64,000 bases of DNA. It comes from Lepidodermella squamata. Taxonomy: Eukaryota > Animalia > Gastrotricha. Below are positions 1 through 64,000 of this stretch, in pieces. The translations under genes and the position numbers were made by a program. The notes beneath the pieces were generated by a model. The model was given only the letters and a program-made list of their open reading frames with translations. It was not told the DNA's origin and ran no database searches. The stretch is from contig JBLDXI010000007.1 of NCBI GenBank assembly GCA_047495785.1, positions 2,294,001-2,358,000 of the forward strand, read 5' to 3'. How positions within the stretch are numbered: position 1 is the first letter of the stretch; every line of letters starts with the position of its first letter.

Positions 1-399
1 GCTGATTTTAATGATTTTATTTTTGAGAATTTAAGCGGATAAGACTTTGTGAAGCAAGATTAGGGTGATCAATAAAATGATTTCACAGTACGAGACGTGA
101 TGAATTGTTCGTGTCATTTTGTAGCTCGCCTTCAGTCCCTTTCGGGCAGACAAGCTACCGGGGTACAAATTTTGTAACAGTGTGTTACTTTCACTTTAAC
201 ACTGAGCGAGAGGCTTTTTTTGAGAAAAGCAGAAAAAACCACTGATTAATTTGCATATTCACACACTATTACGCAGCACTATAAGTCAGCATGGAAAAAA
301 ATCATAAAAAATGCGCACGTAGATGATAATTATGCCTTATTCACTCTATTCACTGCACACGCGCCGGCCAAGGCGTTGGCCCGATCACGGCGGAGAACA

Positions 400-39796: not shown

Positions 39797-40978
39797 ATGC
39801 GAATTTTATCTATTCCGTTTTTGACCGCTATTCTCGGATCTTGCTTCGGGCAAGAATGTGAGTGTAACAGCCCGGATGATCAGGAAATCAACCCACCAAT
39901 TTCAACAATATTTCGCCGCGAAATTCGCGCCAGGTGTCTCTTGTCAACCGAGGCCATGAGCCCGCAAGAGGACGAGCAAGTTGCGACCCAAGTCAAGGTC
40001 TACGTCACAGTCGACCGATTTCAAAATATTGATGATGTGAAAGGAGCCATGAGCATCACAGCTGGGGTGTCAATGCATTACTTTGTGCCCTGTGTTCGTC
40101 AAATCGCTCGGGAATTGAACTATAGCACAGACGGGGTAACGATAATGCTTAATGAAACGCAGTATTGGAAGCCGCAACTTGTCAATCGCAACTCACTTCT
40201 GAGCATGGGAATGACCGAGAAGACTACGAGAATCATGATGCTTCAACCTGAGACTGGAATGTTTGAATATATGATAGTCGGTGATCTGCTAACAAGCTGC
40301 GAACTCGACCTATCCGAATTCCCGTTCGATTCGCAGTCATGCCCGATCACGATTACTTCATTCGTTCTATCGAAATTTCTCGAAATCAGCAACGAAAGTC
40401 AGATTATGCAACTGGGAGGCGCAGTTTTTCCAACGTCGTCGAGTTGGGATTTTAAAGGCTTCGAGACAAAAACGAAACGCGACTTTTTCGGGCCTTACAG
40501 CTATGATGAAGTCACCTTTCACATTAAAATGAAGAGATTGCCTTGGTACTACGTCTCTAGCATTATGTTAATGAACGCGATACTGTCATCGCTGATCAGT
40601 ATAGCCTCACTCATCCCGCCGGATTCTACAAAACGAGCGCAATATGCCGTGACTATACTACTAGCGTTCGTTATGCAACACGACCAAGTTCTGGAAATAA
40701 CCCCACATACGTCGCAAAGTGTCTTCATGACGAATTACATTATGAACGAAATCGTATTGGCGCTTTTTGTTTCGATTTACTCTGTTATTATGGCTGGCGT
40801 TATTGATTTCTTTGGCGATGAGGCTCGTCGGAAAATTCTGGTTTACAAACGTCATGGCCAGCCTAAGTACATTAGTTTTTGCCGATTTATCGATACAGGA
40901 GCTTTTTTCGTGTTCCTAGTGTGGATGCTAGGTCTCCAATCATATGCTATGTATGTCTCGGCCAAAAGTAGTGACTGA
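39797..40978 (+). CDS. Intronless divergent Cys-loop (pentameric) ligand-gated ion channel subunit
   Basis: Signal peptide, WKPQL, Cys loop CELDLSEFPFDSQSC, pre-M1 MKRLPWYYV, four TM segments and IDT before M4. Confidence 0.9.
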   Translation: MRILSIPFLTAILGSCFGQECECNSPDDQEINPPISTIFRREIRARCLLSTEAMSPQEDEQVATQVKVYVTVDRFQNIDDVKGAMSITAGVSMHYFVPCVRQIARELNYSTDGVTIMLNETQYWKPQLVNRNSLLSMGMTEKTTRIMMLQPETGMFEYMIVGDLLTSCELDLSEFPFDSQSCPITITSFVLSKFLEISNESQIMQLGGAVFPTSSSWDFKGFETKTKRDFFGPYSYDEVTFHIKMKRLPWYYVSSIMLMNAILSSLISIASLIPPDSTKRAQYAVTILLAFVMQHDQVLEITPHTSQSVFMTNYIMNEIVLALFVSIYSVIMAGVIDFFGDEARRKILVYKRHGQPKYISFCRFIDTGAFFVFLVWMLGLQSYAMYVSAKSSD

Positions 40979-42920: not shown

Positions 42921-45900
42921 ATGTATTTTTTGTATGTGAACCTCATCGTCCTGCTTGTGGTGCATGAGTTGAATGGGCAGGACTATGGTACCCAGTTCGC
43001 GGCGAATCAATTTTCAAATTTGACAAACCTCGTTGGATACTGGCCGCTTAATTCGATGTTCGGTCTGCGAGATATCTCGCGCAGCCGAATCGATGCCGTC
43101 TCACAGCCGACCTCCTCTCCGGTGACGCAAGGACCCTTCGGACAGCCAGGTACGGCAATTGAAACTCATGCTAACAGCACCGGAAACTACCTAAATCTAA
43201 CGTCGGGTTATCTGAATATTGGTTCTTCATCGGTAACCATAGCTGTTTACGTTTTGACCTCAAAAAGAGGTCCGATATACGAATTCGAGGACGCCACGAT
43301 CAATTACGCTCATCTTTGGAGGCTTGTTTCCGACACCAGTATTATGCAGCCAAATTCCATTTACGTCTCACCCGGACCGGGGTCCGAAATAATTCAGAAC
43401 TGCGACATGTCTGGTTGGCGCTTTGTTGCGCAAGTTTTTGACGCTAGCACTACGAAAATGACAGCAGTGTGCGACGATCAAATCAGTTCGCAACTTACCA
43501 CATCGTCTGTCAGCACTTATAAGACCCTTTACCTCGGAGCGAGGTTGGTATATATCGTAACAGTCAAAAACATTAATACTCTGCCTTGACAGAAATCTCC
43601 CAAATGACGCGCTGTCCGGGCCGTACAACAACAAATACGCTTGCTTTTCCATTCATAAAACAGCGTTCAATGCAGCGCAACTGGGTCTTCTTCGCAGTCA
43701 GTGTCAAATGATAAATCGTGAGTAGCGAATCTTATTTATGTTTCATTTAAAATGTGAAAAAATTGCAGAAATTACATGTCTATCAAGCAAATGTCAACCA
43801 GGGACGTGCGCTGGTGATATTACCACCACAGCGGGCTACCGATGCACTTGTCAAGCTGGCTGGACAAATTGGGACTGCAGCATTCGTAGGCTCACATTGC
43901 ATTCTAGAAGAGTAGGATAACTATGTCAACCCTTTATACCAGCTACCTGTGATCCTGATTGCGGCGTTGGTGGTCGTTGTACTGCCCCTAACACCTGCGC
44001 ATGTTTTACCGGCTGGACTGGCGTTTCATGCAATACACGTGAGACAAGAATTATCGATACTTTCGATCAATCAGTTGCTCTGTCTTCCCAATTCAGGACT
44101 TTCAATCTTAACTGGGGCTTAACTGGGGAAAATAGTGTGACGTATATTATGAGTGATGACAGCCGCAGCTCGGAGGCTCGGAATTTCCTTTGGGCTCAGC
44201 AAGGCTACAGCGATCTTACTCAATAATAATTCAAGGCTCGAACATGAGTTTTCGATCCATAAATCAAGAATTAATATTACCAAAAGTAAACCAAAATCGC
44301 GGATTTTTACATATAATATTAAAGAGCCAAGTTAGCATTTGTACCTCAAGCACGATATTCTGTACCATCGATCGGTACATCTTAGGTACATCTCAATGAA
44401 ATGTATTCATTTTAAGTTGGGATGCTTGGCGAAAACAGCTTCATTTTAAGGCCTGGGCTGGTTTTTTTGCCTGTTAAGACACCTTCAGTATTTTGACACT
44501 TTTGTTACCGTTATTTCTCAGAACGAGCATAACCCTCAATTTAAAATGTATAGTGGCAATAATGTCCGATTGGTAGCAAGAAAACTCGAATTAGTAATAG
44601 TGCGTTCACAAACTACTTCGGAGAGGCGTCCGAAGTTTTCGGCCACCGAAGTTTCGTAATCGCTGCCCGAAGTTTAGATTTTCGTTCACAAACGCGCGCA
44701 TTTCGGCCAGCGCGGCCGAAGTTTTAACAATAGGCGGTGCGCGCGCACAGAACAAAGGACGCGCACAAACTTCGGTTCGGAGAGCCCCAAAACTGCTCTC
44801 CGAAGTGCCTCCGAACCGAAGTTTGAGCGCGTCCGAAGTTATTACGCACGCACGCAAACACGCGCGCGCGCACACAGCCACTTGACCACACTGTACCAGG
44901 CGCCTCAAATTTGTCTTTCCGGTGATATTTGCATTGACAATGCGATCCGTTTCATTAGCCATTAAAAATTACATAGCAATAGTGATAAGCATTTAGATAC
45001 TGAGAAATTAATATTGCAAAAATGTCCGGTTTCTATGACGAATTTTTAAATCTAGAAATAGCGCGGCTCGTATGGAAAAAGTGGCTTTGATGAGAATGCG
45101 CGAGAATATTTAACAAATATTTTTTTATAGCGAATCTGGTGAACTGAGCGCTGAAATGTAGCTTCTTTTTATCCTCATCGGAGAATTAAGGTAAAATGGA
45201 AAAAAATTGCATTGACCCTGAGTACCCGCGCGCGGTGTGTGAGCGAGCGGCCAAACTTCGGCCGCGAACAATAGAAACTTCGGTCGTCACGCTGCGCGCG
45301 CGCGTAGAAAATGCCACTGATAAGGCCGCCGATTTTTGCTATTTCTCTCCGAAGTTTCTACTTCGCTCTCCGAAGCGGTCGGTCTCCGAAGTAGTTTGTG
45401 AACGCACTATAAGCCTCGTTTTGGTGACGACGAGACCGATTTAGTGGCAAGAAACAATATTTTGGTGGCAATTTTTGGATTTTCATATTAGGTGGTAGTA
45501 AACCCGAAATTTTGTGGCTGAAAGCATTTCTGGCTATTAGCTTTTTTCAGCTTTTTTATGCATTCTGACCTTGGTTGAATAAATTTTCAGAGCAATCCAG
45601 TGGTAGAGATAATTTGCAGCAGTTCACCAGTAACCAAGCAAGCTTGCCCAGTCTCCTGGGATATTGGCCGTTAAACAGTCTATTTCGGAATCGAGACATA
45701 TCGGGTAATGGGTTGGATGCAACCTTTCAACCGACTCCTTGTCCTAATACAACCGGACCATTTGGGCAACCGAACACTGCCGTGCAGACCGGCAGTGCCG
45801 GCAACTATATAGACATAACTGCGGACGCTCTCAATCTCACAGCGTCATCTTTCACCATTTCGTTGTTCGCGATTCTGCCCCGGATAGGACCTGTTTTTGA

Positions 45901-47138: not shown

Positions 47139-48329
47139 TTTTTCGATCACGCGAAAATCTGCTAAATACCAGACGTTTAATGTTTTCCTTTATCTTATGC
47201 TTTTTAAAATCGATTGTTTCCGCCTATAATTTTATTCGAAGCGAATATTTCTTCTTTTCTTCGGCCATGTATTATAGCAACGTACGAAAGATGGGGTCAC
47301 GTCTCGCATACATCTATATATGTAAATTTAATAATTTTTCATCATCTGTCTATCAAACGTTAGTATTTTGCTGAATAAATCGAAGTGCGAAAAGCGCAGC
47401 TTGTTTTCGACAAACGTTGTCATGGTTGATCTAATACTGCACAACAGCAAAATACACATCGCGAGGTGTACGCCGCAGCTACAATGTGTCCAAGAAATTT
47501 AGGTGAAAGTTATTCAAGTACACGCCGTTCCGCCATTTCATGGAATTTTTTCAGGTGGGTTCATTCCTTAGAGAGAGGAAATTGGCCAGATTTTTGTGAA
47601 CAATGGCCCGTTTCCATGCCTGAGCTGAAATTAGTTGTCAACACCGCACAATAGTCATAGTCAACACCGAGAAAGAGTCATTGTTAACTCATTGACTGCC
47701 AAGGCCCCGATACATCGGTTTCTCCCAGGAGAAACACTAATACCTCCACTAATATTTGAAATGTGCTGGTCCACTGTGTAAACAACGGGCGCGCATGCAT
47801 GCGCGGGGTAACAATGTAAACAGTAAACACGCAATGTGCGCTGCAGTCACGTGACGGCGTTCGCTTTGTAAAAATGAGAAATCAATCAGAGAGAAATAAT
47901 TCGAATTATCACGCCTTTTATGGCGAGAATGGTGCCTGGAATTTTCAATATAATATTTTGAGGATTCTAATTTCGGATTTTTTATTATGGCACTAACTAT
48001 TCACTATGATTTAGAAAGAGTTTTCTGCCAGTTTTGCTTTGCCGCTGTCATGTTCTCATTTTTGAAGACCGCTTCAAAGTAATAATTTTATCTGTAGACG
48101 ATGTAAAAAAACTCAGCTTACTTCAGCATGAAAGCATTTTACTTCGACAATTTCAGAGCGAAGAGCGATAGCTGATGATTTATTTCGATGAATTATTTCT
48201 AAATTGTGTTTCTTTGCTTTATTCCGAATGCAACCCGCAAATAATTTCCAAATGCTACAACAAATACAATATAAACCATAAAAACAGACAAAAATAAAGC
48301 AAGACAGAGTAGATGAACTGCTCAGAAAA

Positions 48330-48800
48330 TGACGCCTCAGAAGTCCGTGAAGAGGCGAATCCGGAGACAGGCCTTGCGAGTTCTCGGCTAGAAACATGAA
48401 AAGAGGAAGCGGCGGCGGTGCGGCGATGACGGCCGGTTCAAAAGCTGATAGCTCAACCGGAGTAATGGCAGGATAGAAGGACGTGGTCGAGAATAAACAC
48501 GACGTCGGCCTGCGGTATGGGCAACAACGCCACCAACAGCGAATAGGCAGCGCTCAGCAGCGCAGTTGTTGGGAATGAGCTTTCGAGCGGCGCAAAAAAT
48601 GACGCCGTAGGCGAGGGCGATCACAGCCAAGGTCGTGACAAAACCACCAGGCAATGTAGCAACAATTCCGACGAAATCGCCGCTCATTTTTCGGCAGCGA
48701 CCGTCGATGCTGTTGGCAATTTTATCGCGCCGATGTAGTCGCGCAGAACAAGTCGTTGTAGTAATTTTCGTTGTATTCGTCGATGATCATGACATTTCGA
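48330..48800 (-). pseudogene. Frameshifted paralogue of the membrane/AT-hook cargo gene at 51882-52514
   Basis: STNTTKITTTTCSA ~ STTTTTTTTTAWSA; DFVGIVATLPGGFVTTLAVIAL ~ DFGNVLMALAAGFGAALSMLAL; PNNCAAERCLFAVGGVVA ~ PGNGTAEQGLIAVGAVVA; after a frameshift, AVIAAPPPLPLFMFLA ~ AIVAPPPPVFVFRA. Confidence 0.75.
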
Positions 48801-48850
48801 GCAGTACTGCAAATCTGGCAGTAACCGGGCGTTCGGAATCAATAGTTGAT

Positions 48851-51431
48851 TTATCGCTTGTTGAACACATTCATCTGGTGCCATTTGTTGAAGCAGGTGT
48901 TCATGTGAAAAGCAGGATGAGAACCGTCCTCTTTCGGTTGGCAAGCCAGGCACCAATGTGAAACCCTGCCGCCGCAGTTCATACAAGGGCGCTCTTTTTT
49001 ACCAGGCATTTTGGTAAGGTCATGAATCTCGGCTTTTGAGCTGCTGCTGGAAGAATCGTTGCTTTTTGATGAATCGAAGGACTCAGAACTCGCCACTGAG
49101 CCATCCTCTCCGATCATTCCGATCAGAGCTCTAATGACTGCTAAGCGAAATTCAAGAAGCGACATCCGAGAGGTATTTCCGCTTTGCAACTTGAAGAATT
49201 GATGGGCAGCAATCATGCCGCTCTCAAGAATCCTGAAGAAAATTTTTCGATACCATTTATACGACTTCCTATTTGCATCATAGTACGCGGCCTGAAAAAA
49301 TGTGAAAAGATAAAATATTTACGAATAGCTCAAATATGTTTGCTCACATTTTGATCGTGACAATCCACCGCATTCATTGATTTATTGTATTGATCGACAA
49401 TGAGAGGTTTCATGACAGTCTTGATCCTTTTAGCCGGTGGCTCGCCCATACGCGGTGCCGCATCGTCATCGTCGTCGAGTTTGCGCTTCAGGCCGGTTTC
49501 AGACTCAACATCCTCCTCCTCTCCATCTTCGCTATCGCCCTCTGAATCCGAAGCTAGGAAGTACTTGGACATGGCAGAATCGTTGTCGCCGCTATCATCG
49601 CCGTCAAATTCGGCTTCTGAATCCACTTCCACTCCGGTAGAATCTGCCTCAATCTCTTGATATACCGAACTTTGCCCTGTTTGCGTTTCATTGTGCTCGA
49701 TGACCCGTTGAATTCGAGCCGGAAGGGTAATCGGAATCATTTCTGGGGCAAACTCAGTCGATAGCATAAGTACTTCGCGATTGTCCTTCCACTTGAGTAC
49801 ATTGATATCGTCTTGTCTTCGGCAAATTATTTCACCTGTCTTCAAGCTAGCTTGAACCACTTCGGGCGGGTTTCCGACACGGTTTTTTTTCAGTGTTCCG
49901 GTTAGGTGAGTTAGATTAGCCAATAGGTATTTAGCGAGTTCGACGGAAGTGTAAAAATTGTCGACAAAAAGCGAGTGTCCCTTGCCAAGAAGGTATTTGA
50001 TGAGTGATTTCACGACTGAAAATGTGTGGCCTTTGCCAGAAATAATATCATCTTGAACATTATCCGCGCCTGAGTAGACATGGAAGCGAAGAGGGATTCC
50101 AGTTGATGACTCACATAGCATATAGATCTGTAAAATAGCAGATTGAAAACCAAGGTTTTCACACTAGTCTCTAGTCTCACTAGATCGAACCTTCGAAATT
50201 TAAAATTTTAGCTTCGAAATTAAAATTGTGGCTTCAAAAAGTAAAATCCTAGCTTCGAAATTAAAACTGTGGCTTCAAAATGTAAAATCCTAGCTTCGAA
50301 ATTAAAATTTTAGCTTCGAAAAGTAAAATCCTAGCTTCGAAATTAAAATTATGGCTTCGAAAGTAAAATATTGGCAAGAGTTCTATTCCGATAGAATCCG
50401 AGATTTGGGTATTATAATTTTCAAGAATATCACTTCACGCATATACGGATTTTTTTGTTATTTTTCTGAGCCGTTATTCTGCTCCAGAATTCCAGAAATA
50501 ACGGCTACTTATTCTATGTCTTTTATAGCCAAAATATAAGTCGTAAAATGACAGCAAAGCTGAAAGTAAAGGGAGTAAAGGAAGTAAAGGAAAGGTTCTC
50601 CAGATATTTTGATATTTTCGAATTTTTTCATTTTTTTATTTTCATTGCCTAGCGTTTTGATGAAAAATTAAAGAAAAACGGTTTTATGATTTTTGTGGGG
50701 TTCTGTCTCAAGTAAAACATGGCCATAAATTGTCTCAAAAATGCCGCTTTAAAATTAAAATTGCATTCCGATTTTGATATATATATATTTCATTTTATAG
50801 AACCTTTGACCTATCTTACCTTTATACCGAACTTCGCCTTTTTCGCCTTGTTGTACGACTTGAATGCCAGCCTTCCCTTGAAAAGCACTTGAGATTCATC
50901 GATTGCCAGATTTTTGCCAGGTGAATAAAGGTCATTCATCCGATTTTGATAGAAGTTTAGAACAGGTCTGATTTTATAGAGGCGATCGGTTTTGATGTTT
51001 TGCGCCAGAAATTGGTTGTTGTTGAAATGAAGATTTGACAAAATCGCTTCAAATCGATTTCGAGACATCGTCAAATTGAATATCGGTGTTGCCATCAGTT
51101 TGTCCTCCGTCCAGTAGCTTGCGATTGTTGGCTTTCGAATCACTCCCATTAGCAGCCATAAACCGAAAAATCGCTCAAGCTCCGGAACTGTCAATGGCAC
51201 CCAGTCGTTGATTCTGGCGTTGGGTTTAAGCCCAATTTGACGTAATTTTTGATTGGCATATCTATTCGTTTCCTTGCATACCATTTCGAGAAACTCGATG
51301 GTGAAAATTAGCCGGAAAAAGCTAACTGGTGACAATCGACCGCAATCAGGCTGGATTTTAAGTTTTTGGGTTCCGGTGAACGGAAAAGATAGAGGAGGTT
51401 CATCAGAATTGATCCACTCGCTGGCATCCAT
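48851..51431 (-). CDS. piggyBac (PGBD4-like) transposase, 3 exons (51431-50820, 50127-49348, 49291-48851), about 610 aa, apparently intact
   Basis: MSRNRFEAILSNLHF, DRLYKIRP, IDES, KFGIK|IYMLCES, VDNFYTS, WKDNREV, YNKSMNAVDCHDQN|AAYY, KWYRKIFF and a C-terminal Cys/His domain. Both introns are GT-AG and phase 0. Confidence 0.95.
50191..50370. repeat. Minisatellite (about 20-21-bp unit GCTTCGAAATTAAAATTTTA) in transposase intron 1
   Basis: About nine degenerate tandem copies. Confidence 0.85.
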
Positions 51432-51881
51432 GAAATTAGAGACAAAAATCTGAAATCTTTAATTCGAAGTTTGAAAATTCTAAATTGTGTGCCTTTCAGT
51501 GCTAAAGCCCGGGCCGTCAGGAATTCACCGCTTCACCGCACGCGGAAGCATATGTAAACAAAACTGCGTGGTCGAAAAACAAACAAATCCGGAGGCGAGT
51601 TCCTGCAAGATACCGCACCGCGCTATAGGTGAAAATTTCAGGATAATTCCCGGATCAAACAAAAGTGGAACAAAACACAAGACCGAAAATCCGCCAATTA
51701 ATTATTTTATTGCATCATTGCAAAGTCAGAAAAGCCAGAAGCGAAATACAACAATACAATACAAAACGAGTCATCAATCAACAACAATACAAAATTCGCA
51801 ATACTGAGAACTGAGAATACAAAAAACAGCGATAGAAAAATTGTCAGTAATTTACGAAATGTTCAACAGGTAAACAGCAGC

Positions 51882-52514
51882 TCACGCGCGCCTTGGACGG
51901 CCGCGGCCGCGACGAGGCGCCACCGGAGCTGGCGCAACAGGTGGCGCTGCCGGAACGGGCGCTCGAAACACGAAAACAGGAGGCGGCGGTGCGACGATTG
52001 CGGGAATGGCGGCAGGCTGAATGGTGGCTTCGATCGGAGGCGGTGGCAGAATCGGAGGAAGATTCGGCAGAATCGGCCCGGCTCGAGACAGAACAGCCGG
52101 CGGAGGAGGTCGAGCAGGTACCTGCCGCTGAGCAACAACAGCGCCAACTGCGATTAGGCCTTGTTCTGCAGTGCCGTTGCCTGGCTTGTAGGGCACAGGG
52201 TATCTGCGGCGAAAGCAGCACCACCAGATGAAGAAAATAAAAACAGAACACGTCAGCGCTAACATCGACAATGCCGCCCCAAAACCGGCCGCCAACGCCA
52301 TGAGCACATTGCCGAAGTCGGGAGTAGCCGGGGTCGTTGTAGTCGCACTTGTCGCAGTTGTCGGCAATGTCGCCGTCGAAGTACCAGGCGCAGACCAAGC
52401 GGTTGTTGTCGTCGTTGTCGTTGTTGTGGATAGAGCAAGCAAACCCGGCCGCGCTGAACGGGTGACGATGCCGTATCCTGGCTGATAATAAATATCGAAG
52501 TCAAAAGTCGACAT
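51882..52514 (-). CDS. Transposon cargo: single-pass membrane protein with Thr-rich N-terminus, Pro-rich tail and terminal AT-hook
   Basis: 210 aa: poly-Thr region, hydrophobic VLMALAAGFGAALSMLALTCSVFIFFIWW, CCFRRRY, Pro/Ala-rich tail and C-terminal PRRGRGRPRRA. Confidence 0.7.
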   Translation of the reverse strand: MSTFDFDIYYQPGYGIVTRSARPGLLALSTTTTTTTTTAWSAPGTSTATLPTTATSATTTTPATPDFGNVLMALAAGFGAALSMLALTCSVFIFFIWWCCFRRRYPVPYKPGNGTAEQGLIAVGAVVAQRQVPARPPPPAVLSRAGPILPNLPPILPPPPIEATIQPAAIPAIVAPPPPVFVFRAPVPAAPPVAPAPVAPRRGRGRPRRA

Positions 52515-52599
52515 TATTCAGAAATTTGTTAGCTCGAATTTACTTATTTTTATTTTCTTTCCTCCTTTTGTAGTCACCTTTCAACCGTTTTACTGTATC

Positions 52600-52860
52600 A
52601 TTACGTCGGCGTCGTCACAGCCGACCGCGGTCTCGCTGTCTGCCAAAACAGCCGAGCGGCTCCAAGGGCATGTTAACCGGCCGCGACGCCCACCGGCGCC
52701 GTTTCAAAGTCTGTAATTACTGACCGCGCACTACAACCGCCCGCCTCGCCACAGGTGCGCGCGCGCGCTTTCTCCACAGGTGCGCGCCCGGTGCGCGCCC
52801 GGTGCGTAATCACACGCTCGAGTGAGGATCACGTATTTTATGTCAACGGCGTGGGACTAG
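52600..52860. promoter_or_regulatory. GC-rich putative bidirectional promoter between divergent cargo genes
   Basis: CpG-rich island with repeated CCACAGGTGCGCGC and CCGGTGCG motifs between ATG 52514 (-) and ATG 53001 (+). Confidence 0.45.
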
Positions 52861-53000
52861 AAAGGAATTAAATTGAAATGAAAATATTTGCCAAAGCCAT
52901 TTCCGGATACCTGATGAGCCGTTCAAGCAATATATAGCCAGCTCCAAAAAGTCACCAGTCACCAGATAAATTTTTCAAACAGAATTTCCGTCATTTTGTA

Positions 53001-53951
53001 ATGAAAGGCTTTTTTCATGTATTTTTTGCGGCGGCGCTTATTATGCCTGCGTGCTGCTTGGAAATAACTGAAATATCGCCAACTCAGGTCATTTCAGGTC
53101 GATACTATTATGACCAGCTGAAAGCTCAGAACAATTCTTGTGTCGATAGATGGCTTGAACACGCGAAAAAGTTGTGCGCAAACTCAGTGATGTCGTGGCA
53201 AAATGTCGCCGAGTCAGCTCTCAAATGCTATCTGTCGGCCAAAAACTCTACAAAAGCTATAAATTGTCCTATGACACAGCCTACAGAATTCGCCAGCCAA
53301 ATTAATTGCTTGAAAAATTCTCTCGAAGTTTTAGACTGGCTCACTTACATGATTTTCGTTGGCGAAATTCGCGAAATATGTAGCTATTTTTTATTTTTCA
53401 AGGAAGAAAATTCTCCTCTCTACATACTCGCTAGACACTTTGTTCAGGCAGTAGTTGATTGCTTTCCAATTGAAGGCCCCGTGATTGATTTTTTCTCATA
53501 TTTCAAAGAGTCGACGCTTTTCGTCGCTGTTACTTCTCAAGTCTTTTACAACTCTTCGCTTGAACAGTCTTTCTTGAGGTATCGAGTCTCATTCTACATA
53601 TTTCACAGTGTTTTCCTGACATTATTTCGACGAAAAAAATTCCTAATATCTTTGTATCTTGTTGCCTTCGCCGAGTTCGCTCTCCAAATTTTTCTCAAAT
53701 CAAAAAGTGGGTTTGAATGGCGATATTTTCTTGGAGAGTATCTATTGATTATTTTGCTTCGCTGGCTATTCATCATCCATTTCTTGATTTTTGGAGAAAT
53801 ATGGTCGCCTGTTCATAATTTATGGAAAAGGCTTAGCCATTGCTGGGACTACAGTTCAACTTATCTCTGCAAACTAGGACGCGATCTAACCCCGCGAAAA
53901 ACTGATGTTGCATCTGTCAAAACAAGGTCGAAAAAGAAATCCGAGGATTGA
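53001..53951 (+). CDS. Transposon cargo: Kar5/GEX1/Brambleberry-like membrane protein (signal peptide, 6-Cys domain, 2-3 C-terminal TMs)
   Basis: CVDRWLEHAKKLC...QNVAESALKCYL...NC...NCLKNSLEVLDWLTYMIFVGEIREICSYF matches by eye the Cys spacing and the W/F-x-x-Y...IC end of the family's cysteine-rich domain. Hydrophobic segments and a basic tail follow. Confidence 0.65.
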   Translation: MKGFFHVFFAAALIMPACCLEITEISPTQVISGRYYYDQLKAQNNSCVDRWLEHAKKLCANSVMSWQNVAESALKCYLSAKNSTKAINCPMTQPTEFASQINCLKNSLEVLDWLTYMIFVGEIREICSYFLFFKEENSPLYILARHFVQAVVDCFPIEGPVIDFFSYFKESTLFVAVTSQVFYNSSLEQSFLRYRVSFYIFHSVFLTLFRRKKFLISLYLVAFAEFALQIFLKSKSGFEWRYFLGEYLLIILLRWLFIIHFLIFGEIWSPVHNLWKRLSHCWDYSSTYLCKLGRDLTPRKTDVASVKTRSKKKSED

Positions 53952-54324
53952 TCTGAACCTTTTCGATTTTTTCTATGCCGGAAGGAAATTTTTTAATTTG
54001 TTGCGCTACTTTGGGAATTTCGACATAAAATTTGTGAAAAATTTGCAAAATTGGGATAACTTGAAAATAATTGACCCTTCAGTATTTTACGGTAGCGAGA
54101 AACAATTTCCTTTCGGCAGCAGCCTTTTTCTTCAACTCGTCCGTCTCATTCATTCGCGACGATGTTTTTTACATTTTGATTATTGGCTTTGCCTGAATTT
54201 CGTTCATTTCATTTATTCATTGAAGGCTAAATTTGAGTACCTCTTTTCAATAATTGCTGATTGTATCGTTTAGCTCCAGTAAAACAAAGTCTGATGCTGT
54301 ACTATTTTGTTTTTTATTTTAGGA

Positions 54325-55096
54325 ATGCAAGTATTTACGAATTTAGTTTCTACTGTGGTCGAGAGGCATCGCCTAGCTGTTCGGGAGACAAACCGAGAAT
54401 TCTATGGAACCAGCCGATTTGAAGAGAGCGGTTCAACGGCCGATGTAAGTCGCTTGAAAAATTAGATCCGTCAGCATTTTCGTATTTTTTCCACATTCGT
54501 AGAGCGATTCTCGAATTGGCGTGTATGACTTCGGCAGCGAGTCGGAATCGATCTCCGTCTCAAGCTCTTCAACGCCATTGCAACAAAGCACCACGTCGGC
54601 TTTAGCGCCGCCAACAGCTGTATCCGCAATTCTACCGTTCAAAGACGCAGCGTCTAAAATTACGCCGCTTCGACAGGTTCATCGGCTCGTTTTTCGGCGT
54701 GACGCGCGTCAATCGGAAACAAATGAAAATCACTCCCACGCTCAATGGATCGCAAGAAGTTTCGCCGACCTGCCTGGTGATAATGACACAAATAGCATGA
54801 TATTGTTAGGTTCGCATGTGCTGGAGCAAGAAATCATAAAATCGGCTTATGAAATGCATAAAGATAAACCTTGTTTGTTTGCGAAAAGAATTTTGAAAGA
54901 ATGTGAAAGTCGGTCCCGGCAATTTAGCAATGCGTCAGTTTGGAATGATGCGGATTTGATTGACGATGTAACAAAACTTGTAATGCAAAAATACGATCAT
55001 TTTTTCCTAATTCGACGTGCTATTTGCCAAAATTTCGCAGAGTGTAATCGTAAAAAGAAAGCATACGAGTCGAAGAAAAAATCGGCGAAAAATTAG
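54325..55096 (+). CDS. Transposon cargo: putative BEN-domain DNA-binding protein, 2 exons (54325-54444, 54503-55096), about 237 aa
   Basis: In-frame gtaagt...cgtag intron; Ser-rich N-terminal part; C-terminal PCLFAKRIL...SV..DADLIDDVTKLVMQKY...IRRAICQNFAECNRKKK resembles the BEN helices; Lys-rich NLS-like tail. Confidence 0.55.
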
Positions 55097-55696
55097 CAAT
55101 TTGTGCTTTGTGCGTGGTGATCAGTTTTTTGTTCTTGTTGCTTGAAATAAATGTTTTTGTTCCAATGATTTTTGATAACTCCTGAATTATTTTCACCTGA
55201 ATTTTCACTACTTGGCGGTTTGCGCAAATAATAACGTTTCGAAAACAGGCTTCAAGTTTGATTTACGCATTCAACAGCGAGGGCGAAGACCGCGTCTTTG
55301 TTTACTGGTCGCACTTGAGAGTCACCCAAGGCGCGCCCGATTTGTTTGCATAACAGCTAACAGCGGCGATAAACGCGCATGTTTTGTTTATTTTAAACCT
55401 TGAACAAACATAACACAAAACGCGAAATCGCTATTCCAGCATCTCGCTAGGTGAAAGTTGGGTTTCTCCGGGGAGAAAAACTCACGTGAGAAAAAAATCT
55501 CCGGGAGAAAACTCTGGCAGTGAAAGAGTTAAGGAACAGTCATCTTTATTACACATTCTGCCTCGATGTTTTCAGTTATTCTGCAGTTGTCCAGAGTTGT
55601 GTAATTGTATATAAGCGAAAGAAAATTAAGAAAATCATGAGAGATTCAACGACATTTGCAATAGCTATAACAAAAACCACAACGGCGACAAACAAA

Positions 55697-58600
55697 TCAC
55701 AACAAAAATTCGGAGCAAACAACAGCATTAGCAGCTCGCATTTCGAAGCAAGAGAAGTCGTTGCACAGCTTCTTGAACTCCCTGAGTGTCTCGTTAAACT
55801 TGTTCCGTTTAGCCACATCAAGCGCCATCTTGAACTGCTCGACGTGATCTTCGATTTCGTCACACTTTGCGAGATATTTAAATACTGAAGCGAGATTCTT
55901 TTCAGCTGCAACGACCAGAGCGGACTTGCCATTCCTCGCCGACCATTTGACAGGTTCATTTGAGTATTTTTGAAACATCATCAAGGTAACAACTCGTTGC
56001 CGCTCTGAAATCGACCCGCTAAGTGTCTGGAACCAAGCGTCATAGACGTTGTAGGAATTGATGAACTTTTTGGCCAATTCACTTCGCCCAAATCTAGCTG
56101 CCAGCATCAGTGGATTGAACTGCACTTCATCGTCGAAATCGAGCCTGATGGTGGCGTTAACATCAGCATCATTTTTGAGCAGCACTTCGAAAAACTCGAC
56201 GTCAAAGTCGCTCATCACCGCAAAGTTGAGGCAATCCATTCGCAAGAGCCCAGACTCGACAATTTTAACCACGCTGACATTCGGATTGGCGCCTCTCTTC
56301 AGTAGAAGCTTGAAGTTATCCAACTTCTTACAGGCCAAAGCTCGGAATAACGCGGATTGGTTGCTGAACACACCGGTATCGCAAGCTTCTGCAGCTTTGG
56401 CATCTTGCCAATTGACGTTGTAGCCTTGAGCCAGCACTTTTTCAAGCGTTTCAGCGCCGTTTTCGAGCCCGGCCGCTTCGATAAGTTCGCGCTGTTTAAC
56501 AACGACATTTGCAGAGGGTTCGCAGGATCCGGCTGGTTCCCACCTCCCGAAGCCGAACGGGCAGTCGAGTTTTTCCGAACCGACCAAAGAGAACCCGTTG
56601 TAGCACTTGAGAAGCGGCTCGATGTGGTCGCCAGCGACGTAGCCGTTTTCGATGTTGGACGGGTGTCCATAGCACGGTTTCACTTGTCGGCATAGTTCGC
56701 CGCCCAAAACCCGGTAACCGACCGATTCGCATAGAGATTTAAAGAATGCTGATCCAAATGATTTAACGTCTTGTGCAATGTAGTTCGGGTTGATCTTGCC
56801 GAACTCAGCAGCGATTTTGAAGCTGTCCTGTTCGAGTTTGTGCGGGTCTACTCTAGTTGTCGGCGATTCGATAGTTGAAACGTCGGTCTCAGGGTTCTGG
56901 TTTTCGAATTCAATTCGGTTCGATGCGGTTGTAGTTGTTGACGTAGTAGATGAGTCGCATTCAGTTTTCAAGCAGGCGTTTGATAGATCAATTGACCACG
57001 AACCGCTTTGCAAGCATTCAGCCACTACGCTTTCGAGCTCAAAATCTGAACAGATCACTTTGACTTTCTGGCGAGTGAGAAAGGTTTTCCGATCGTTGGC
57101 TGGTGGCCATGTTAATATTCCAGGCTTTTGAGGCGCCACAAAGACTTCGCCTCCGGTAACTAACGGCAAGTCGCATGCCTGAAGTCAAAATGTAGGAATC
57201 AATGATTACGTTGATCAAGAAAATCAAGATTTTTAAAGGGTCTTACTTTTAGCGGAACCAAATTTGCCTGTTACCGGAACCAAATTTTGGAATTTTCAAT
57301 GGGTGGTTTTCTCGAAGCGGTTTTGTCGATGTTAAGACCAAACTGGGTATAGACCTGGTTTCATGTAGACCAAATCAAATTAGCATTTGGTTTTAGGATT
57401 GTCCACGAATTTTTGTCGATTGTTCTTTTGGTACATTCAATTGTTATGAAACACAGACGTTGGGACAAACGGCTAAAATAGCTGTTAATCCGGCGATGGA
57501 TGGCTTTCTTTAAAACCAAGTTTTAAATTTTAAAACCGAACTGTTTCAAACCCCCCGTTAAAACCGCCTGTTCAGCCCCAATTTACCCATGAGCTGTAGA
57601 CCCGCACCCTACCGGGTCTACACATTTGGAGTTTATTTTCTAGAAAAATCTGGTTTCAGCTTCTCATGAACGAGACAACTGAAACCCGAGTTCTAAAAGT
57701 GATATTTAGAACCCAAGAATAGCCCCGCGTGAATACGGACCAGTTCGACAGTTTGCATAGATGAAGTAACGAGTACTCTATACCGATACAAGACTAAGGA
57801 CAGGATCTAACATCGGCTAAATGGCGATGAAACTTTACGCATTAGCGAAAAACAAACTTCATGAAAAACTCTGAAACCACCTCTTCCGATGAGCGTAATT
57901 TAAGATGGATGATTAATTTGCATATTCCAATATTTTATTCATCCGCGTTATTACATGGAAATGCACATGAATATTTTCAGCAGGATTTTTTTGAGGGGAT
58001 TTCCTGCCTGGGTGTAAAAATAGAAAATAGTTGACCAATTATTCATCAAAAGGAGCCGATTTGAATATCTGAATATTTCTCATATGAAACGATTAGTGCA
58101 TTTTGCGGATTCATATTGAGTACCTTTCGTTTTCATTGGCTAATAAATTCACCATCTCGCTAATTTTACCTATCAATAATTTTCGCTATCAAGAAATGTT
58201 ACCCTATTTTTCTGAAAATAATTTATTTAGTACTTGCGCTACAACCTGCATTCTGCATTCACATTTCAAAATGTTAAATTTAAGGTAGATAAGTGATCAA
58301 CTTCAGGCTGAGATTAATGTGGCATTACTATATCCAAATTCTGGGATCGTAAAATAATGCCGATTTCACAGCCGAAGTCATTCGACTCGAAATAAGCAAA
58401 TGAACTGTGGTTACCTGAAAATCTAAGGTAACCCGGCCGATTTCACGTGTAAAATGCGCGAAAAAATTGTGGCAATTTAAATGGAATGAAGCAATAAATC
58501 ATCATGTTAGTTTCTGCCAGATGGTTCATATATTCGAGTCAAAGAAATGCGGCCATGTTAAATCCTTGGTTAAATCACGTGTCAGACAAGCTACCCAATT

Positions 58601-60171
58601 TCGTCAAGGTCGCTGCTACCTCCAAGAAATCGGTATTGATTTTATCTGTTTTGGACGGTGTTTTGATTTAGAGGAATCTCCGGGTATACATCAATTTAGT
58701 ATGGCAGTCATTTTCCCGGCCAGGTGGTTAGATAAAGGGGTAATAATTTGGAAAATCATGGCTTTCATGAAAAAATCGCCGAGAACTTTTAATTAACTTC
58801 GAAATGATCGCATTATTGAACTACAGACAGCCGGAAATTCATTTAATATTGACCTGCCAATTTTTCATTTTTGGCAAAGGGCTCGGGTTAGCCGAGGAGA
58901 AAATGTTCCCCAGCATCACAGTTAACCAGGCTGTACCGCCCATTTTTCGAAGAGCAGGAATCCCTAAATTTGGTCGCTGCGGCTTAACTTCGGCCACTGG
59001 CCGAAATTCGGACACTAAGTGCTGTGCAGCAAAAAAAAATTCTAAATTCAGGCGAGGGGGCCATGTCGCTTCTCGAGTGCTTTGTACCATAAACACCCGA
59101 ATTTCAGGCATCATGTCGTCAAGGATAAGCTCTCAGGTAAAGCAACAAAGGCCATTTCCACGTTAGGCGAATTACCGAGGCGAATTTAACGGTATCAAAC
59201 TTAAGGTATTAGTGTAACTGGATGAGGTGGCCGAAATTAGGGCACCCGGTTCCCTATTCCAACAATTCCACATTTTCCAACATATTCTAATTTCAAAGTT
59301 AATTTCCAAATTTTTCGTAATTTTAACGTGATTGTTACGCAACCTAATTAGTCTAATAAAGTCTACAGTTAATCCCCGATCAGAAACTGAACTCGTTTTA
59401 TATACGCAAGAATAAGCTCTTGGTCTTGTTCAGACCGAAAATGTTTTTGGTTTGGTCTTATAAAACTTGGTTTTAATGTAAACTGCTTCGAGAATACCAC
59501 CCAATGTGCCTGAAACCACTTTTCGAACCTTTTCAGGATGACATGATTGATCAGCCAAATTCCAAATAAATCATCTTTAAATTCAGCCTGAAATTCTGTG
59601 TAAGACGCGTTCATCGCTATAGAATTCAGACATTGCCCCAATTTCGTAGAAATATTCGAAAAGTGACCTTTTTCTCATCTAAAATTATGTTCCGCAACAG
59701 GCAAATTCGGTTCCGCTAAAAGATATTCTGATTTTTAAATAGGTTTGATAACAAGGTTTGATTTTTCATTAAAATTACCTTAGAAACCTCGAAATATAGC
59801 ATTTTTTCAAAATAAATAATAACAAAAATACTGTTGGAATTCAAACAACTCGATATCAAAAGAATTCGAAGCAAAAATAAAAAAAACCAACAGTTGCTCC
59901 CAAATTTTCCCAATGGATTCAAAGCATGTTTCTTTGAAGTATGTTGCAATTGGGAATCCAGGACATTTGAAATGATGTTTGGGGTGCCGTCAAGGACGAA
60001 TGTTGGTAATTATTGGGAAAAAAAATTTATTTCGACTAAAATTTTAATTTTAAATTTTAAACATTTTTAAAGGCTGGTAATATTTTTAAGAAATTTCAAA
60101 CTCACTTGAAAGCTTGGCTGGCTGCAAATAACAACAACGCCAAGCAAGGAGAAGACAATTTTCGAAAACAT
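55697..60171 (-). CDS. Putative secreted sushi(CCP)x2 + ankyrin-repeat protein, 2 exons (60171-60106, 57178-55697)
   Basis: Exon 1 MFSKIVFSLLGVVVICSQPSFQ|gtgagt joins in phase 0 to ttcag|ACDLPLV. CCP motifs (ECLQSGSWS, IENG...CYNGFSLVGS...C...GRW...C) are followed by ANK motifs (KLLLKRGANPN, LLKNDADVN, NPLMLAARFG, GKSALVVAAE). The exon 1 link is inferred. Confidence 0.65.
58420..58560 (-). mobile_element. Degenerate internal fragment of the 10367-10857 MITE family
   Basis: TAGTTTCTGCCAGATGGTTCAT is the reverse complement of ATGAACCATCTGGCAGAAACTA at about 10410; GGTAACCCGGCCGATTT mirrors AAATCGGCCAAGTTACC. Confidence 0.65.
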
Positions 60172-62916: not shown

Positions 62917-63201
62917 TCATTTTTTATGCGTTGCCTGATGATGTTGAGACAGTTCGTTGCGGTACTTGACCTTGCAGCAACAGTCAATTGAGCAATTGCA
63001 CGCATCGTTCGCACATTTGCAATTATTGGCCGAGCAACAGCAATGGCAGTTCAGCTGATCGTCCGATTTGCTTTTCGACATTTTCCGACTCAGCCGGCGT
63101 TCCAGCCTAGGGCTGTATGCTGCTTTCGGGTGGTCCTTTGGCGCAAGTTTTACGCAACACGTAGAAATACCGTTGGCGCAAGTTTCACATTCGCACGGCA
63201 T
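62917..63201 (-). CDS. Metallothionein-like Cys-rich protein (94 aa from ATG 63201)
   Basis: MPCECETC...CC, then a Cys-free linker, then CHCCC...CKC...CNC..CCC and a His-rich tail; 16 Cys. An upstream exon cannot be excluded. Confidence 0.55.
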   Translation of the reverse strand: MPCECETCANGISTCCVKLAPKDHPKAAYSPRLERRLSRKMSKSKSDDQLNCHCCCSANNCKCANDACNCSIDCCCKVKYRNELSQHHQATHKK

Positions 63202-64000
63202 GTTCTCGTTAGGATTTTGGCAGAAATTCAAAAAAATAATAAAAACGGATAGGTTGTGAGAAATTGTTAAAATAATATTATATTATCAACAGAGTTATTT
63301 TAATGATTTTCACTTGAGGTAATCGCTTCTTTTAAGATTATAATGTAAAATCTCTCAAGTTCAAGTATGATGGTTATATTTTGACGTAGTAATTAGAACC
63401 GGCACAATTTCGATTTTTATCCATTCCAGCGCTTGAAACCGCGTTCATTTCATTAATTGTCGGAGGTAGCCAAGATTCGGATGATGAATCTCCGTTTGAA
63501 TAACAATTCTTTGCATCGCTATTGATTTTCGAAGAGGGTATCAGCTTCAGATAGCGAAATACACTGCTTTCTTGCCTCGTGTGATGTAAAAGCGGAATTT
63601 TATCCATTGTGAAAATTGTTAAAATATTGTTTGAATATTTCGGCATTTAAAATCAAACATCAGCTTTTGCGGTTTTATAGACACCTCGCCGGCGTTTATA
63701 TATGTAGAGGTCTGGCAAGTAAAACATCATCACGTGATCCTTCGGCCCAGTCCGTCATGTAAACACGGCTGTAAGCATGTAGTGATTAGCTTATATAATA
63801 ATAATAAAAACGTCGGTCAGGTGAGCGCAGAAAAAAACGAGACGCACGTGATAAGGTGAGTGCTAAATAACATCGGAAAAAAAATTAGAAAAAACATCAC
63901 CTATCAACGCTCAGGAAATTTTCATTGATTGTCAAAAAATTACAGTAAATTCGAAGTAAAATATTTTTGTAATTTTCCGATAAGATTTGAAACGTAACAA

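Follow-up and report, generated by a model that had tools for sequence, protein, structure and literature searches.

Two questions are raised by an open reading frame at positions 53001-53951 of the 64-kb stretch of DNA analysed here (the window): whether it is carried by a transposon and whether its product belongs to the Kar5/GEX1/Brambleberry family of nuclear-fusion proteins. A first-pass annotation of this DNA had proposed both. The family is reportedly defined by the work of Ning et al. 2013 and Abrams et al. 2012, and to our knowledge Brambleberry is its sole characterised animal member. The explanation that we prefer, at a probability of roughly 0.45, is that the intact single-exon ORF is a lineage-restricted accessory gene or a captured gene for a membrane glycoprotein, located in a 7.85-kb piggyBac-like transposon. 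In what appears to be the most likely reading, the Kar5/GEX1-like cysteine framework of its product cannot at present be told from convergence. The features on which the argument is built are compiled in Table 1.

Table 1. Features of the candidate element and of the ORF 53001-53951, in window coordinates.
Feature	Position	Strand	Remarks
Candidate piggyBac-like DNA transposon	47684-55532		7,849 bp including both TTAA
Candidate left end	47684-47701	+	TTAA (47684-47687) and 14-nt TIR; TTAA-anchored pair search, terminal 18-mer
Left internal palindromic repeat	47717-47735		about 15-18 nt inside the TIR
piggyBac-type transposase gene	48851-51431	-	DDE_Tnp_1_7 plus C-terminal Cys/His-rich stretch
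Orphan accessory ORF, 210 aa	51882-52514	-	Thr-rich stretch, one TM segment, Pro-rich tail
GC-rich central region	52600-52830		66% GC, CpG o/e 1.44, between the divergent gene pairs
TATA-like heptamer	52931-52937	+	read by eye, 64 nt upstream of the ATG; function putative
Kar5-like candidate ORF	53001-53951	+	ATG start, 316 codons plus stop, intron unnecessary
Predicted signal peptide, aa 1-19	53001-53057	+	hydropathy and -3/-1 rule
Six-Cys framework, predicted lumenal, aa 47-127	53139-53381	+	C47, C59, C76, C89, C103, C127
Predicted lumenal linker, aa 128-190	53382-53570	+	aromatic-rich, Pro/Gly-interrupted, with C154 and sequon N184
Three predicted TM helices	53571-53795	+	aa 191-209, 214-232, 247-265
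Basic C-terminal tail	53796-53948	+	net +6; predicted cytosolic or nucleoplasmic
Third accessory ORF, orphan	54325-55096	+	191-aa open frame ending at 55096
Right internal repeats	55461-55509		left-end palindrome present twice, the copies separated by a CACGTG palindrome
Candidate right end	55515-55532	-	14-nt TIR and TTAA (55529-55532); TTAA-anchored pair search, terminal 18-mer

The ORF is a real, intact single-exon gene. Its stop-to-stop segment comprises 337 amino acids, and by chance the six frames of the window would hold only about 4e-5 open frames of 316 codons or more. The codon-usage score is positive in the annotated frame only, in both halves of the ORF, and lies 1.8-2.3 z units above stop-free Markov nulls. 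The possibility that the C-terminal half represents an open intron or UTR was rejected, as both halves are codon-positive and the pattern of TM segments and charges is coherent. The protein can be read through 316 uninterrupted codons, in agreement with the earlier statement that the gene has no introns. A quite different explanation is that the frame is a silent relic, recently inactivated or never expressed in a decaying element, and gives rise to no product. Such a fate would fit the codon score of 0.074, a value that most ORFs with Pfam support in the window exceed (0.14-0.25), the GC content of 39.5%, which is below that of host coding ORFs, and the interruption of the transposase of the same element. 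A product with no homologue anywhere and the fact that no canonical AATAAA was seen downstream of the ORF point in the same direction. The chance expectation and the restriction of the codon signal to this one frame argue against it, and signal peptide, sequons, TM segments and charges form a single coherent topology that would not be preserved under decay. We consider a silent relic very unlikely.

Analysis of the deduced protein revealed the layout of a membrane glycoprotein. The N-terminal hydrophobic stretch (aa 4-22) has a Wimley-White sum of 6.9 and a KD value of 1.99 and is followed by small residues at -3 and -1 before aa 20, so that aa 1-19/20 resemble a signal peptide by these heuristic rules. 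Three N-glycosylation sequons (N44, N82 and N184) all fall within the predicted lumenal part. This part contains seven cysteines including C154; two further cysteines each are found in the signal peptide and in the tail. The interval of 63 residues between the sixth cysteine and the first TM segment is broken by P138, P156, G159 and P160, is rich in aromatic residues, serine and threonine and has few charges. It offers neither the room nor the composition for a coiled coil, and none was found in aa 128-190. Wimley-White octanol sums of 10.9, 10.1 and 18.0 were obtained for the three consecutive TM candidates. The loop between the first two reads RRKK, and together with the basic tail it fits the positive-inside rule for a protein with its N-terminus in the lumen and its C-terminus in the cytosol. 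Additional TM segments at aa 115-182 were considered and rejected; their Wimley-White sums reach only 2-3 and they are charged, which led us to read them as lumenal helices. AF2 had to be run without an alignment because the product has no relatives, and the models were unusable (pLDDT 43.7 with the whole protein as input, 42.9 with aa 21-170). In this poor model the linker shows only short broken helices at low confidence. Much of the protein layout in the first-pass annotation was borne out: the signal peptide, the basic tail, the short form without a long coiled coil and, with three strong candidates, the "two to three" C-terminal TM segments. The string given as the end of the cysteine domain does run into C127. 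The description as a six-Cys lumenal domain holds for the six positions of the framework but overlooks the seventh lumenal cysteine, C154.

Searches for relatives of the product returned nothing that could place it in a family. No Pfam family, Tht1 (PF04163) included, matched the whole protein or the cysteine domain alone at E ≤ 10. The first-pass annotation had tied its family assignment to a profile or structural match, and on Tht1 a profile match does not exist at that threshold. When the protein was divided into four pieces, Pfam reported a single line, Galaxin_repeat (E 0.079, 13 bits), which was treated as chance. PDB sequences contained no relative and no structure of the family, and word-indexed protein searches with the whole protein and with aa 21-170 gave no match at E ≤ 10. 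An exhaustive phmmer search of 1.84e9 protein representatives likewise yielded no relative; its sole match, P0001, was rejected after reading and alignment as a translated tandem repeat that owes its score to repeated weak matches. Viral and metagenome contig scans contained nothing like the product, exact look-ups were empty, and no Kar5, GEX1 or Brambleberry member appeared among the matches of any protein search. Orphan status is common in this window, since about half of its other long ORFs also have no Pfam match.

With respect to the family, these negative searches weigh little, because its members have diverged to a point where BLAST does not connect even the fungal ones (PMC5720818). 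The spacing of the cysteines was compared as well. The six cysteines of the ORF are separated by 12, 17, 13, 14 and 24 positions, those of Kar5p by 12, 23, 14, 11 and 25 (PMC4291462) and those of AtGEX1 by 12, 20, 13, 9 and 23. In Kar5p and in the ORF they extend over about 80-85 residues, and gaps one, three and five are nearly the same (12/12, 14/13 and 25/24). The L1 distance between the gap vectors is 11 for the ORF and Kar5p and 9 for the ORF and AtGEX1, compared with 8 between the two family members. Among 177 six-Cys windows in the 64 kb only one, that of the ORF itself, exhibits this type of spacing, and the probability of matching two distant family members by chance is 0.1-1.8% under simple nulls.

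Residues around the cysteines were compared by eye with the plant GEX1 alignment in the supplement of PMC7586128. The stretch between the fifth and the sixth cysteine begins with C-L-K as in plants and, counting back from the sixth cysteine, shares I (-1), E (-5), F (-8, invariant in plants) and Y (-11). Before this cysteine, 5 of 12 positions lie within the plant residue sets, while 1.8 are expected. The corresponding segment is the most conserved one in yeast, where it is the 'conserved domain' at 116-167 (PMC4291462). The remainder of the domain shows a different picture. None of the conserved plant positions after the first cysteine and only one after the third are matched; the ORF lacks W and A-Y, invariant in plants behind Cys1, and S-G-R, likewise invariant behind Cys3. 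From these residues we derived a rough likelihood ratio for kinship, which lies anywhere between about 1 and about 150 according to the set of columns taken as conserved throughout the family.

Taken at face value, the spacing and the residues between Cys5 and Cys6 favor true kinship over convergence and thus speak against our preferred explanation. The ORF would then be a very divergent Kar5/GEX1/Brambleberry member without the coiled-coil hairpin, captured from the host or evolved within the transposon, and its cysteine-rich domain would directly adjoin the three TM segments in the perinuclear or ER lumen. Signal peptide, six cysteines and three C-terminal TM segments are arranged as in GEX1 and agree with the family layout in everything save the coils (PMC4291462, PMC7586128). 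The family is defined in part by its coils, one to three regions between the cysteine-rich domain and the TM segments, and yeast Kar5p needs both of its own (PMC4291462); their absence from the ORF argues against membership. In AF2 models of GEX1 the coiled coil forms an antiparallel hairpin that returns the cysteine-rich domain to the membrane (PMC9324357, which names the AlphaFold entries Q681K7 for AtGEX1 and Q67UU1 for OsGEX1), so that deletion of the coil would be geometrically tolerable. The unmatched Tht1 profile, the lack of family members in every search, the missing plant-invariant residues and the seventh lumenal cysteine all count against kinship, as does a low prior: a genome has one gene of this family and thousands of secreted, cysteine-containing membrane proteins. 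The label Kar5/GEX1/Brambleberry-like hence describes a resemblance of architecture. Membership is unproven and in our estimate doubtful, although possible. What stands of the original assignment is the signal peptide, the six-Cys spacing, the three TM segments and a few residues, whereas the kinship it implied is not borne out by the empty searches.

Comparison with the individual proteins gives a similar balance. Kar5p of Saccharomyces cerevisiae, which represents the Pfam family Tht1, resembles the ORF product in its N-terminal signal peptide, in being mostly lumenal and in a short-looped pair of TM segments near the C-terminus. In contrast, Kar5p has 504 amino acids with essential coiled coils at 186-215 and 401-436, two TM segments and no tail, while the ORF encodes 316 amino acids, no coil, three TM segments and a basic 50-aa tail, lies in a candidate transposon and does not match the Tht1 profile. 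GEX1 of Arabidopsis and other plants, Chlamydomonas and Plasmodium shares the signal peptide, the six-Cys CRD and three C-terminal TM segments, but is about 590-640 aa long, and its two or three coiled coils fold into a hairpin (PMC9324357). Zebrafish Brambleberry has the same family architecture according to published descriptions (PMC4291462, PMC7586128), and the likeness is stated here at that level; this protein is reported with two TM segments and coiled coils instead of three TM segments and no coil.

The surroundings of the ORF were inspected for transposon ends. Of the TTAA-anchored inverted pairs that flank the transposase, only the one at 47684 and 55532 matches at 12 or more of 16 positions, and its 14-nt TIRs are identical at 12 of 14 positions. 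The terminal 18-mer occurs in the window at these two sites only, in inverted orientation. On the strength of generic repeat scans, and with the 12/16 TTAA pair taken as chance, the ORF had been judged not to be transposon-borne; this judgement was overturned by extending both arms. The 124-nt arms align with a score of 29, compared with 15.5 +/- 2.7 for the null, and only 3 of 1500 random TTAA-anchored pairs reached this value (empirical p = 0.002). Furthermore, a palindromic 14-mer was detected in the whole window, with up to two mismatches, only at the left internal repeat and at 55464-55477. One copy of the internal palindrome is located on the left and two on the right, at unequal spacing, so that the motif lies within 60 nt of both candidate ends. 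A canonical piggyBac end consists of TTAA followed by a 13-14-nt TIR and then by a palindromic internal repeat, with unequal spacing (PMC5861402).

The same region could also be read as an ordinary host locus, in which the ORF lies off any transposon, the TTAA ends are a chance pair or relics of different insertions and the adjoining transposase gene has been domesticated or is a remnant of its own. By our estimate, chance would yield about 0.3 pairs this good in the set of TTAA pairs examined, and the TIR identity is only 12/14, but the internal palindrome, which has no other occurrence in the 64 kb, provides independent evidence, and the arm-to-arm alignment is difficult to obtain from random pairs. 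The 64-kb window holds a single copy of the element, and the homology to the transposase breaks off at two or more points; the candidate ends nevertheless bracket a transposase of the piggyBac type and follow the canonical order of TTAA, TIR and unequally spaced palindrome. Finally, 7.85 kb is large for piggyBac, and natural piggyBac-like elements normally contain the transposase only (PMC6431247). We regard an ordinary host gene as unlikely. The end structure, with one copy visible, supports the view that the ORF is carried by a TTAA-flanked piggyBac-like transposon, as first proposed, with transposase and ORF enclosed by the TTAA/TIR pair and the internal palindromes. It has to be held against the preferred explanation that mobile carriage is argued from this structure alone.

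Within these ends, the candidate element combines the transposase gene, the ORF 53001-53951 and two other orphan ORFs around a GC-rich centre. Pfam DDE_Tnp_1_7 matched two ORFs of the transposase (E 4.9e-46 and 3.8e-25) at profile positions 1-280 of 349. The homology is distributed over at least three reading-frame segments, which corresponds to at least two frame changes due to introns or lesions, and the transposase carries one long acidic insertion relative to the profile. An uninterrupted transposase frame, as expected of an autonomous copy, was not found at 48851-51431. Its C-terminal ORF with the Cys/His pattern had no Pfam match. The neighboring ORF at 51882-52514 gave only composition-level matches to sialomucin-like families (E ≥ 0.06). 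The 191-aa frame of the third accessory ORF may be preceded by a short ATG exon at 54325-54444 that ends at a predicted GTAAGT splice donor. None of the three accessory ORFs contains a viral hallmark. In the centre, GC-rich motifs with a CAGGTG core are repeated, and we infer from the arrangement that the region 52600-52830 acts as a divergent promoter.

Canonical piggyBac of Trichoplusia ni and piggyBac-like elements share with the candidate the TTAA duplication, the TIR and the unequally spaced palindromes (PMC5861402) as well as a DDE_Tnp_1_7 transposase with a Cys/His-rich C-terminus. They differ in their size of 2-3 kb and in encoding a transposase only, compared with 7.85 kb, three further ORFs around a GC-rich centre and an interrupted transposase homology. 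Teratorn of teleost fish is similar insofar as a piggyBac-type transposase and TIRs move many non-transposase genes (PMC6431247). Teratorn, however, measures 41-182 kb and transports a herpesvirus genome, whereas the cargo of the candidate element is three small orphan ORFs.

According to our preferred explanation, the ORF 53001-53951 would be one of three accessory genes of an element that lies between genes of an animal-like host. Two gene pairs would start from the putative divergent promoter in the centre, the Thr/Pro-rich membrane ORF and the transposase leftward, the ORF 53001-53951 and the other orphan rightward. The product is predicted to enter the ER by means of a cleaved signal peptide. 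Its lumenal part of about 170 aa would be N-glycosylated and probably disulfide-bonded, with the six-Cys framework and one extra cysteine. Three helices would hold the protein in the membrane, TM1 and TM2 as a tight hairpin and TM3 behind them, and the basic 50-aa tail is predicted to face the cytosol or nucleoplasm. The lumenal domain could share the compartment of the Kar5, GEX1 and Brambleberry cysteine-rich domains, given that the ER lumen opens into the perinuclear space. The ORF, the ends of the element and the domain layout are established here; signal peptide, topology and glycosylation sites are sequence predictions; residence in the ER or nuclear envelope, disulfide bonds, expression from the centre and any effect on the host are inferences.

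Natural piggyBac-like elements are expected to encode the transposase alone, the known exception being the herpesvirus fusion Teratorn. For the piggyBac superfamily, a compact element in which three accessory genes are arranged about a promoter in the centre would represent a different way of carrying genes. If the kinship were true, the ORF would be the first Kar5/GEX1/Brambleberry gene seen on a mobile element, which would thereby encode a perinuclear-lumen protein related to the machinery for fusion of pronuclei or karyomeres. It would also be the first natural coil-less member, a 'minimal' version of a family in which every domain was thought to be essential, and would bear on what the cysteine-rich domain does alone. 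The full combination, a piggyBac-type transposon with its own central divergent promoter that carries a coil-less member of the family, is distinctly doubtful. If unrelated, the product is an orphan transposon-borne membrane glycoprotein of modest interest, mainly for transposon researchers.

Rfam detected no RNA gene in the window. A search with its 846-aa ANF-receptor ORF and a metagenome scan with its tandem-array family gave no matches. The DNA does not resemble that of humans: the window contains invertebrate-type domains and compact genes, and CpG is not depleted.

A piggyBac-type transposase is encoded on the minus strand (DDE_Tnp_1_7 in Pfam, E 4.9e-46 and 3.8e-25). Generic repeat scans around it detected no long inverted repeats, and a scan of all flanking TTAA pairs displayed a single pair at 12/16. 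This pair was initially taken for mere chance, a reading overturned by extending both arms, which revealed inverted repeats and, a few tens of bases inside each end, a palindromic internal repeat (Table). The terminal 18-mer has no further occurrence in the window, and the palindromic repeat is present in the 64 kb only at these two sites, the right side having in addition a second copy and a CACGTG palindrome. Of 1500 random TTAA-anchored pairs, 3 reached the arm-to-arm alignment score. Canonical piggyBac ends consist of TTAA, a short terminal inverted repeat (TIR) and a palindromic internal repeat with unequal spacing on the two sides (PMC5861402). As the ends show the same layout, including the unequal internal-repeat spacing, we read the region as one piggyBac-like element with a probability of about 0.8, a value limited by the single visible copy. 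TTAA, TIRs and palindromic repeats bracket both the transposase and the focal ORF, and this structure bears out the description of the latter as transposon-borne. Directly outside the left end lie 2.3 copies of a 23-nt unit, which reach into the TTAA. The closing hexamer of the unit recurs just inside the TIR, which may be a coincidence or a trace of the insertion site.

Coordinates of the candidate element, the focal ORF and neighboring features in the window
Feature	Position	Strand	Remarks
Candidate piggyBac-like element	47684-55532		7,849 bp
Element ends	47684-47701 and 55515-55532		TTAA + 14-nt inverted repeat each
Palindromic internal repeat	47720-47733 and 55464-55477
23-nt repeat	47637-47688
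Transposase	within 48851-51431	-	leftward from central region, beyond Thr/Pro-rich ORF
Thr/Pro-rich membrane ORF	51882-52514		210 aa; leftward from central region
Central region	52600-52830		66% GC; CpG observed/expected 1.44; repeated motifs
CAGGTG motif copies	52746-52806		in central region
Focal ORF	53001..53951	+	rightward; TATA-like heptamer 64 nt upstream of ATG
Framework Cys of focal ORF	aa 47, 59, 76, 89, 103, 127		from translation
Strong TM candidates of focal ORF	aa 191-209, 214-232, 247-265		recomputed from window
Sequons of focal ORF	N44, N82, N184		from translation
Further orphan ORF	ends 55096		rightward; possible short upstream exon
Tandem array	24400-47200		paralogous secreted-protein genes; one side of element
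Ankyrin/Sushi gene	55697-57169	-	other side of element
Cys-loop-receptor-like ORF	39797-40978		393 aa
Foldback- or MITE-like structure	44597-45410		nested hairpins 44757-44834
Inverted repeat pair	57246-59722		nested pair 57505-57540 / 59446-59481
Cys-rich ORF	62917-63231	-	104 aa

None of the three accessory ORFs of the element matched a Pfam family or carried a viral hallmark. The transposase homology changes frame at least twice and thus falls into three or more frame segments, the interruptions representing either introns or lesions; it also contains one long acidic insertion compared with the Pfam profile. A 41-bp tandem unit (about four copies, 89% matches) lies in the transposase region. 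In the central region, three GC-rich motif copies with CAGGTG overlap an 11-nt perfect tandem repeat; the copies may be sites for transcription factors in a divergent promoter.

The ORF listing of the window contained the focal ORF as an ATG-initiated frame of 316 aa with exactly the annotated coordinates. About 4e-5 open frames of this length are expected by chance in the six frames of the window. Codon-usage log-odds, trained on 14 other long ORFs of the window (7 with Pfam matches), were positive only in the annotated frame, which held for both halves, and the score exceeded stop-free Markov nulls by z = 1.8-2.3. Recomputation from the window sequence showed that the N-terminus (aa 1-19/20) is hydrophobic and has small residues at -3/-1, that an RRKK turn joins the first and second transmembrane segments (TMs), and that the tail has a net charge of +6. 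ORF coordinates, predicted signal peptide, six cysteines, two to three C-terminal TMs and basic tail of the first-pass annotation were all recovered, the TM candidates numbering three. Its six-cysteine lumenal domain stands as far as the framework is concerned, but the predicted lumenal part harbors a seventh cysteine, C154, absent from that count. All features fit a predicted topology with lumenal N-terminus, three TMs and a cytosolic or nucleoplasmic tail.

Common features of the Kar5/GEX1/Brambleberry nuclear-fusion family include one to three coiled coils and two or three C-terminal TMs (PMC4291462, PMC7586128, PMC9324357). The conserved cysteines of yeast Kar5p (C56, C68, C91, C105, C116 and C141) are spaced by 12,23,14,11,25 residues (PMC4291462) and those of AtGEX1 (79, 91, 111, 124, 133 and 156) by 12,20,13,9,23 (alignment of the lumenal cysteine-rich domain, CRD; supplement of PMC7586128). 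The corresponding gaps in the focal ORF are 12,17,13,14,24. With summed absolute gap differences of 11 to Kar5p and 9 to AtGEX1, compared to 8 between Kar5p and AtGEX1, the focal ORF is about as distant from these proteins as they are from each other. The probability of such a match to Kar5p was 0.2% for uniform cysteine placement, 1.8% with a minimum gap of 8, and 0.1-1.3% when any six of the seven cysteines were allowed. Stop-to-stop segments of 60 aa or more in the 64 kb contained 177 windows of six consecutive cysteines in all, of which only that of the focal ORF came within 15 of Kar5p.

Residues were compared by eye with a printed alignment of GEX1 from nine plants (PMC7586128 supplement). 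The Cys5-Cys6 stretch, which is the best kept part between budding and fission yeast ('conserved domain' 116-167, PMC4291462), begins with C-L-K as in several plant GEX1 proteins. Counted back from Cys6, the focal ORF shares I(-1), E(-5), F(-8) and Y(-11) with plant GEX1, F(-8) being invariant in all nine plants, whereas M replaces an invariant L at -10. Altogether, 5 of the 12 positions before Cys6 fell within the plant residue sets, with about 1.8 expected. In contrast, the plant-invariant W and A-Y following Cys1 and the S-G-R following Cys3 are missing. The resulting residue likelihood ratio for kinship is rough, and the choice of columns taken as conserved outside plants moves it between ~1 and ~150.

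Searches with the whole protein detected no Pfam family at E <= 10. In particular, Pfam Tht1, the Kar5p profile, matched neither the whole product nor the lumenal domain or the halves on their own. The sole Pfam line for these pieces, Galaxin_repeat (E 0.079), is at chance level. PDB sequences contained nothing relevant, word-indexed protein searches gave no match for the whole protein or for aa 21-170 alone (E <= 10), viral and metagenome contigs yielded no relatives, and exact look-up found no record of the sequence. An exhaustive phmmer search, in which 1.84 billion protein representatives were read with no length window, returned one protein (P0001, E 5.9e-4). This hit was rejected as a relative, its score being the sum of repeated weak matches to the query: the 397-aa 'protein' is built from ~62-aa repeats and is evidently a translated satellite. 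Repeats can thus push a chance match past an E-value threshold. The empty searches carry limited weight, because divergence within the family is high enough to defeat BLAST even between fungi (PMC5720818). AF2 without an alignment reached a pLDDT of 43.7 for the whole protein and 42.9 for aa 21-170.

The 63 residues between Cys6 and the first TM are rich in aromatic residues, Ser and Thr, and are interrupted by three Pro and one Gly, so that no coiled coil fits. As a description, the proposed short form without the long coil is correct. In yeast Kar5p both coils are essential (PMC4291462). For GEX1, AF2 models show the coils as an antiparallel hairpin that returns the CRD to the membrane (PMC9324357), so that a hairpin-less family form is geometrically conceivable. 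The resemblance to the Kar5/GEX1/Brambleberry framework and layout is real and statistically unusual; kinship is not demonstrated, because profile similarity and the coiled coil, two defining testable features, are absent. Hence, we do not class the focal ORF as a member and consider true membership rather unlikely. It is most safely described as an intact gene that a piggyBac-like element carries as an accessory. The predicted product is a glycoprotein inserted into the ER with three TMs, and its lumenal cysteine framework mimics the one seen in the nuclear-fusion family.

The element is located between two host gene sets, the tandem array and the ankyrin/Sushi gene. The array comprises at least five paralogous units with 72-77% DNA identity over ~0.9 kb. 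Each contains two ~200-aa ORFs with a common G-Y-W-P-L-N motif, the first with a signal peptide, followed by an EGF-like Cys-rich exon; the main domain matched no Pfam family, and EGF matches were weak. Within the array, a perfect 28-nt inverted repeat with arms 758 nt apart is accompanied by nested near-perfect hairpins and another 14-nt pair, a foldback- or MITE-like structure. The window also codes for ankyrin-repeat proteins, an ANF-receptor protein and a trypsin/Sushi protein (Pfam), and about half of its long ORFs have no Pfam family. For the 846-aa ANF-receptor ORF, protein searches found no relative at E <= 1e-10. The Cys-loop-receptor-like protein (Neur_chan_LBD, E 5.9e-16), encoded in a single ORF, has a very short membrane part with no space for a long M3-M4 loop.

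Genes are tightly packed (0.4-0.6 kb gaps), many with long single exons, and CpG is not depleted (observed/expected 1.16 across 64 kb). The window is a compact, animal-like chromosome region that does not resemble human DNA, and these properties suggest that the genome is compact and sparsely methylated at CpG. To the right of the ankyrin/Sushi gene, two 42-46-nt inverted repeats with 81-87% complementarity are separated by 2.4 kb and hold another, nested pair. The stretch encloses short ORFs only and looks like a non-autonomous DNA transposon. Finally, a very Cys-rich ORF with CC/CCC runs and C-x-C has a metallothionein-like composition.
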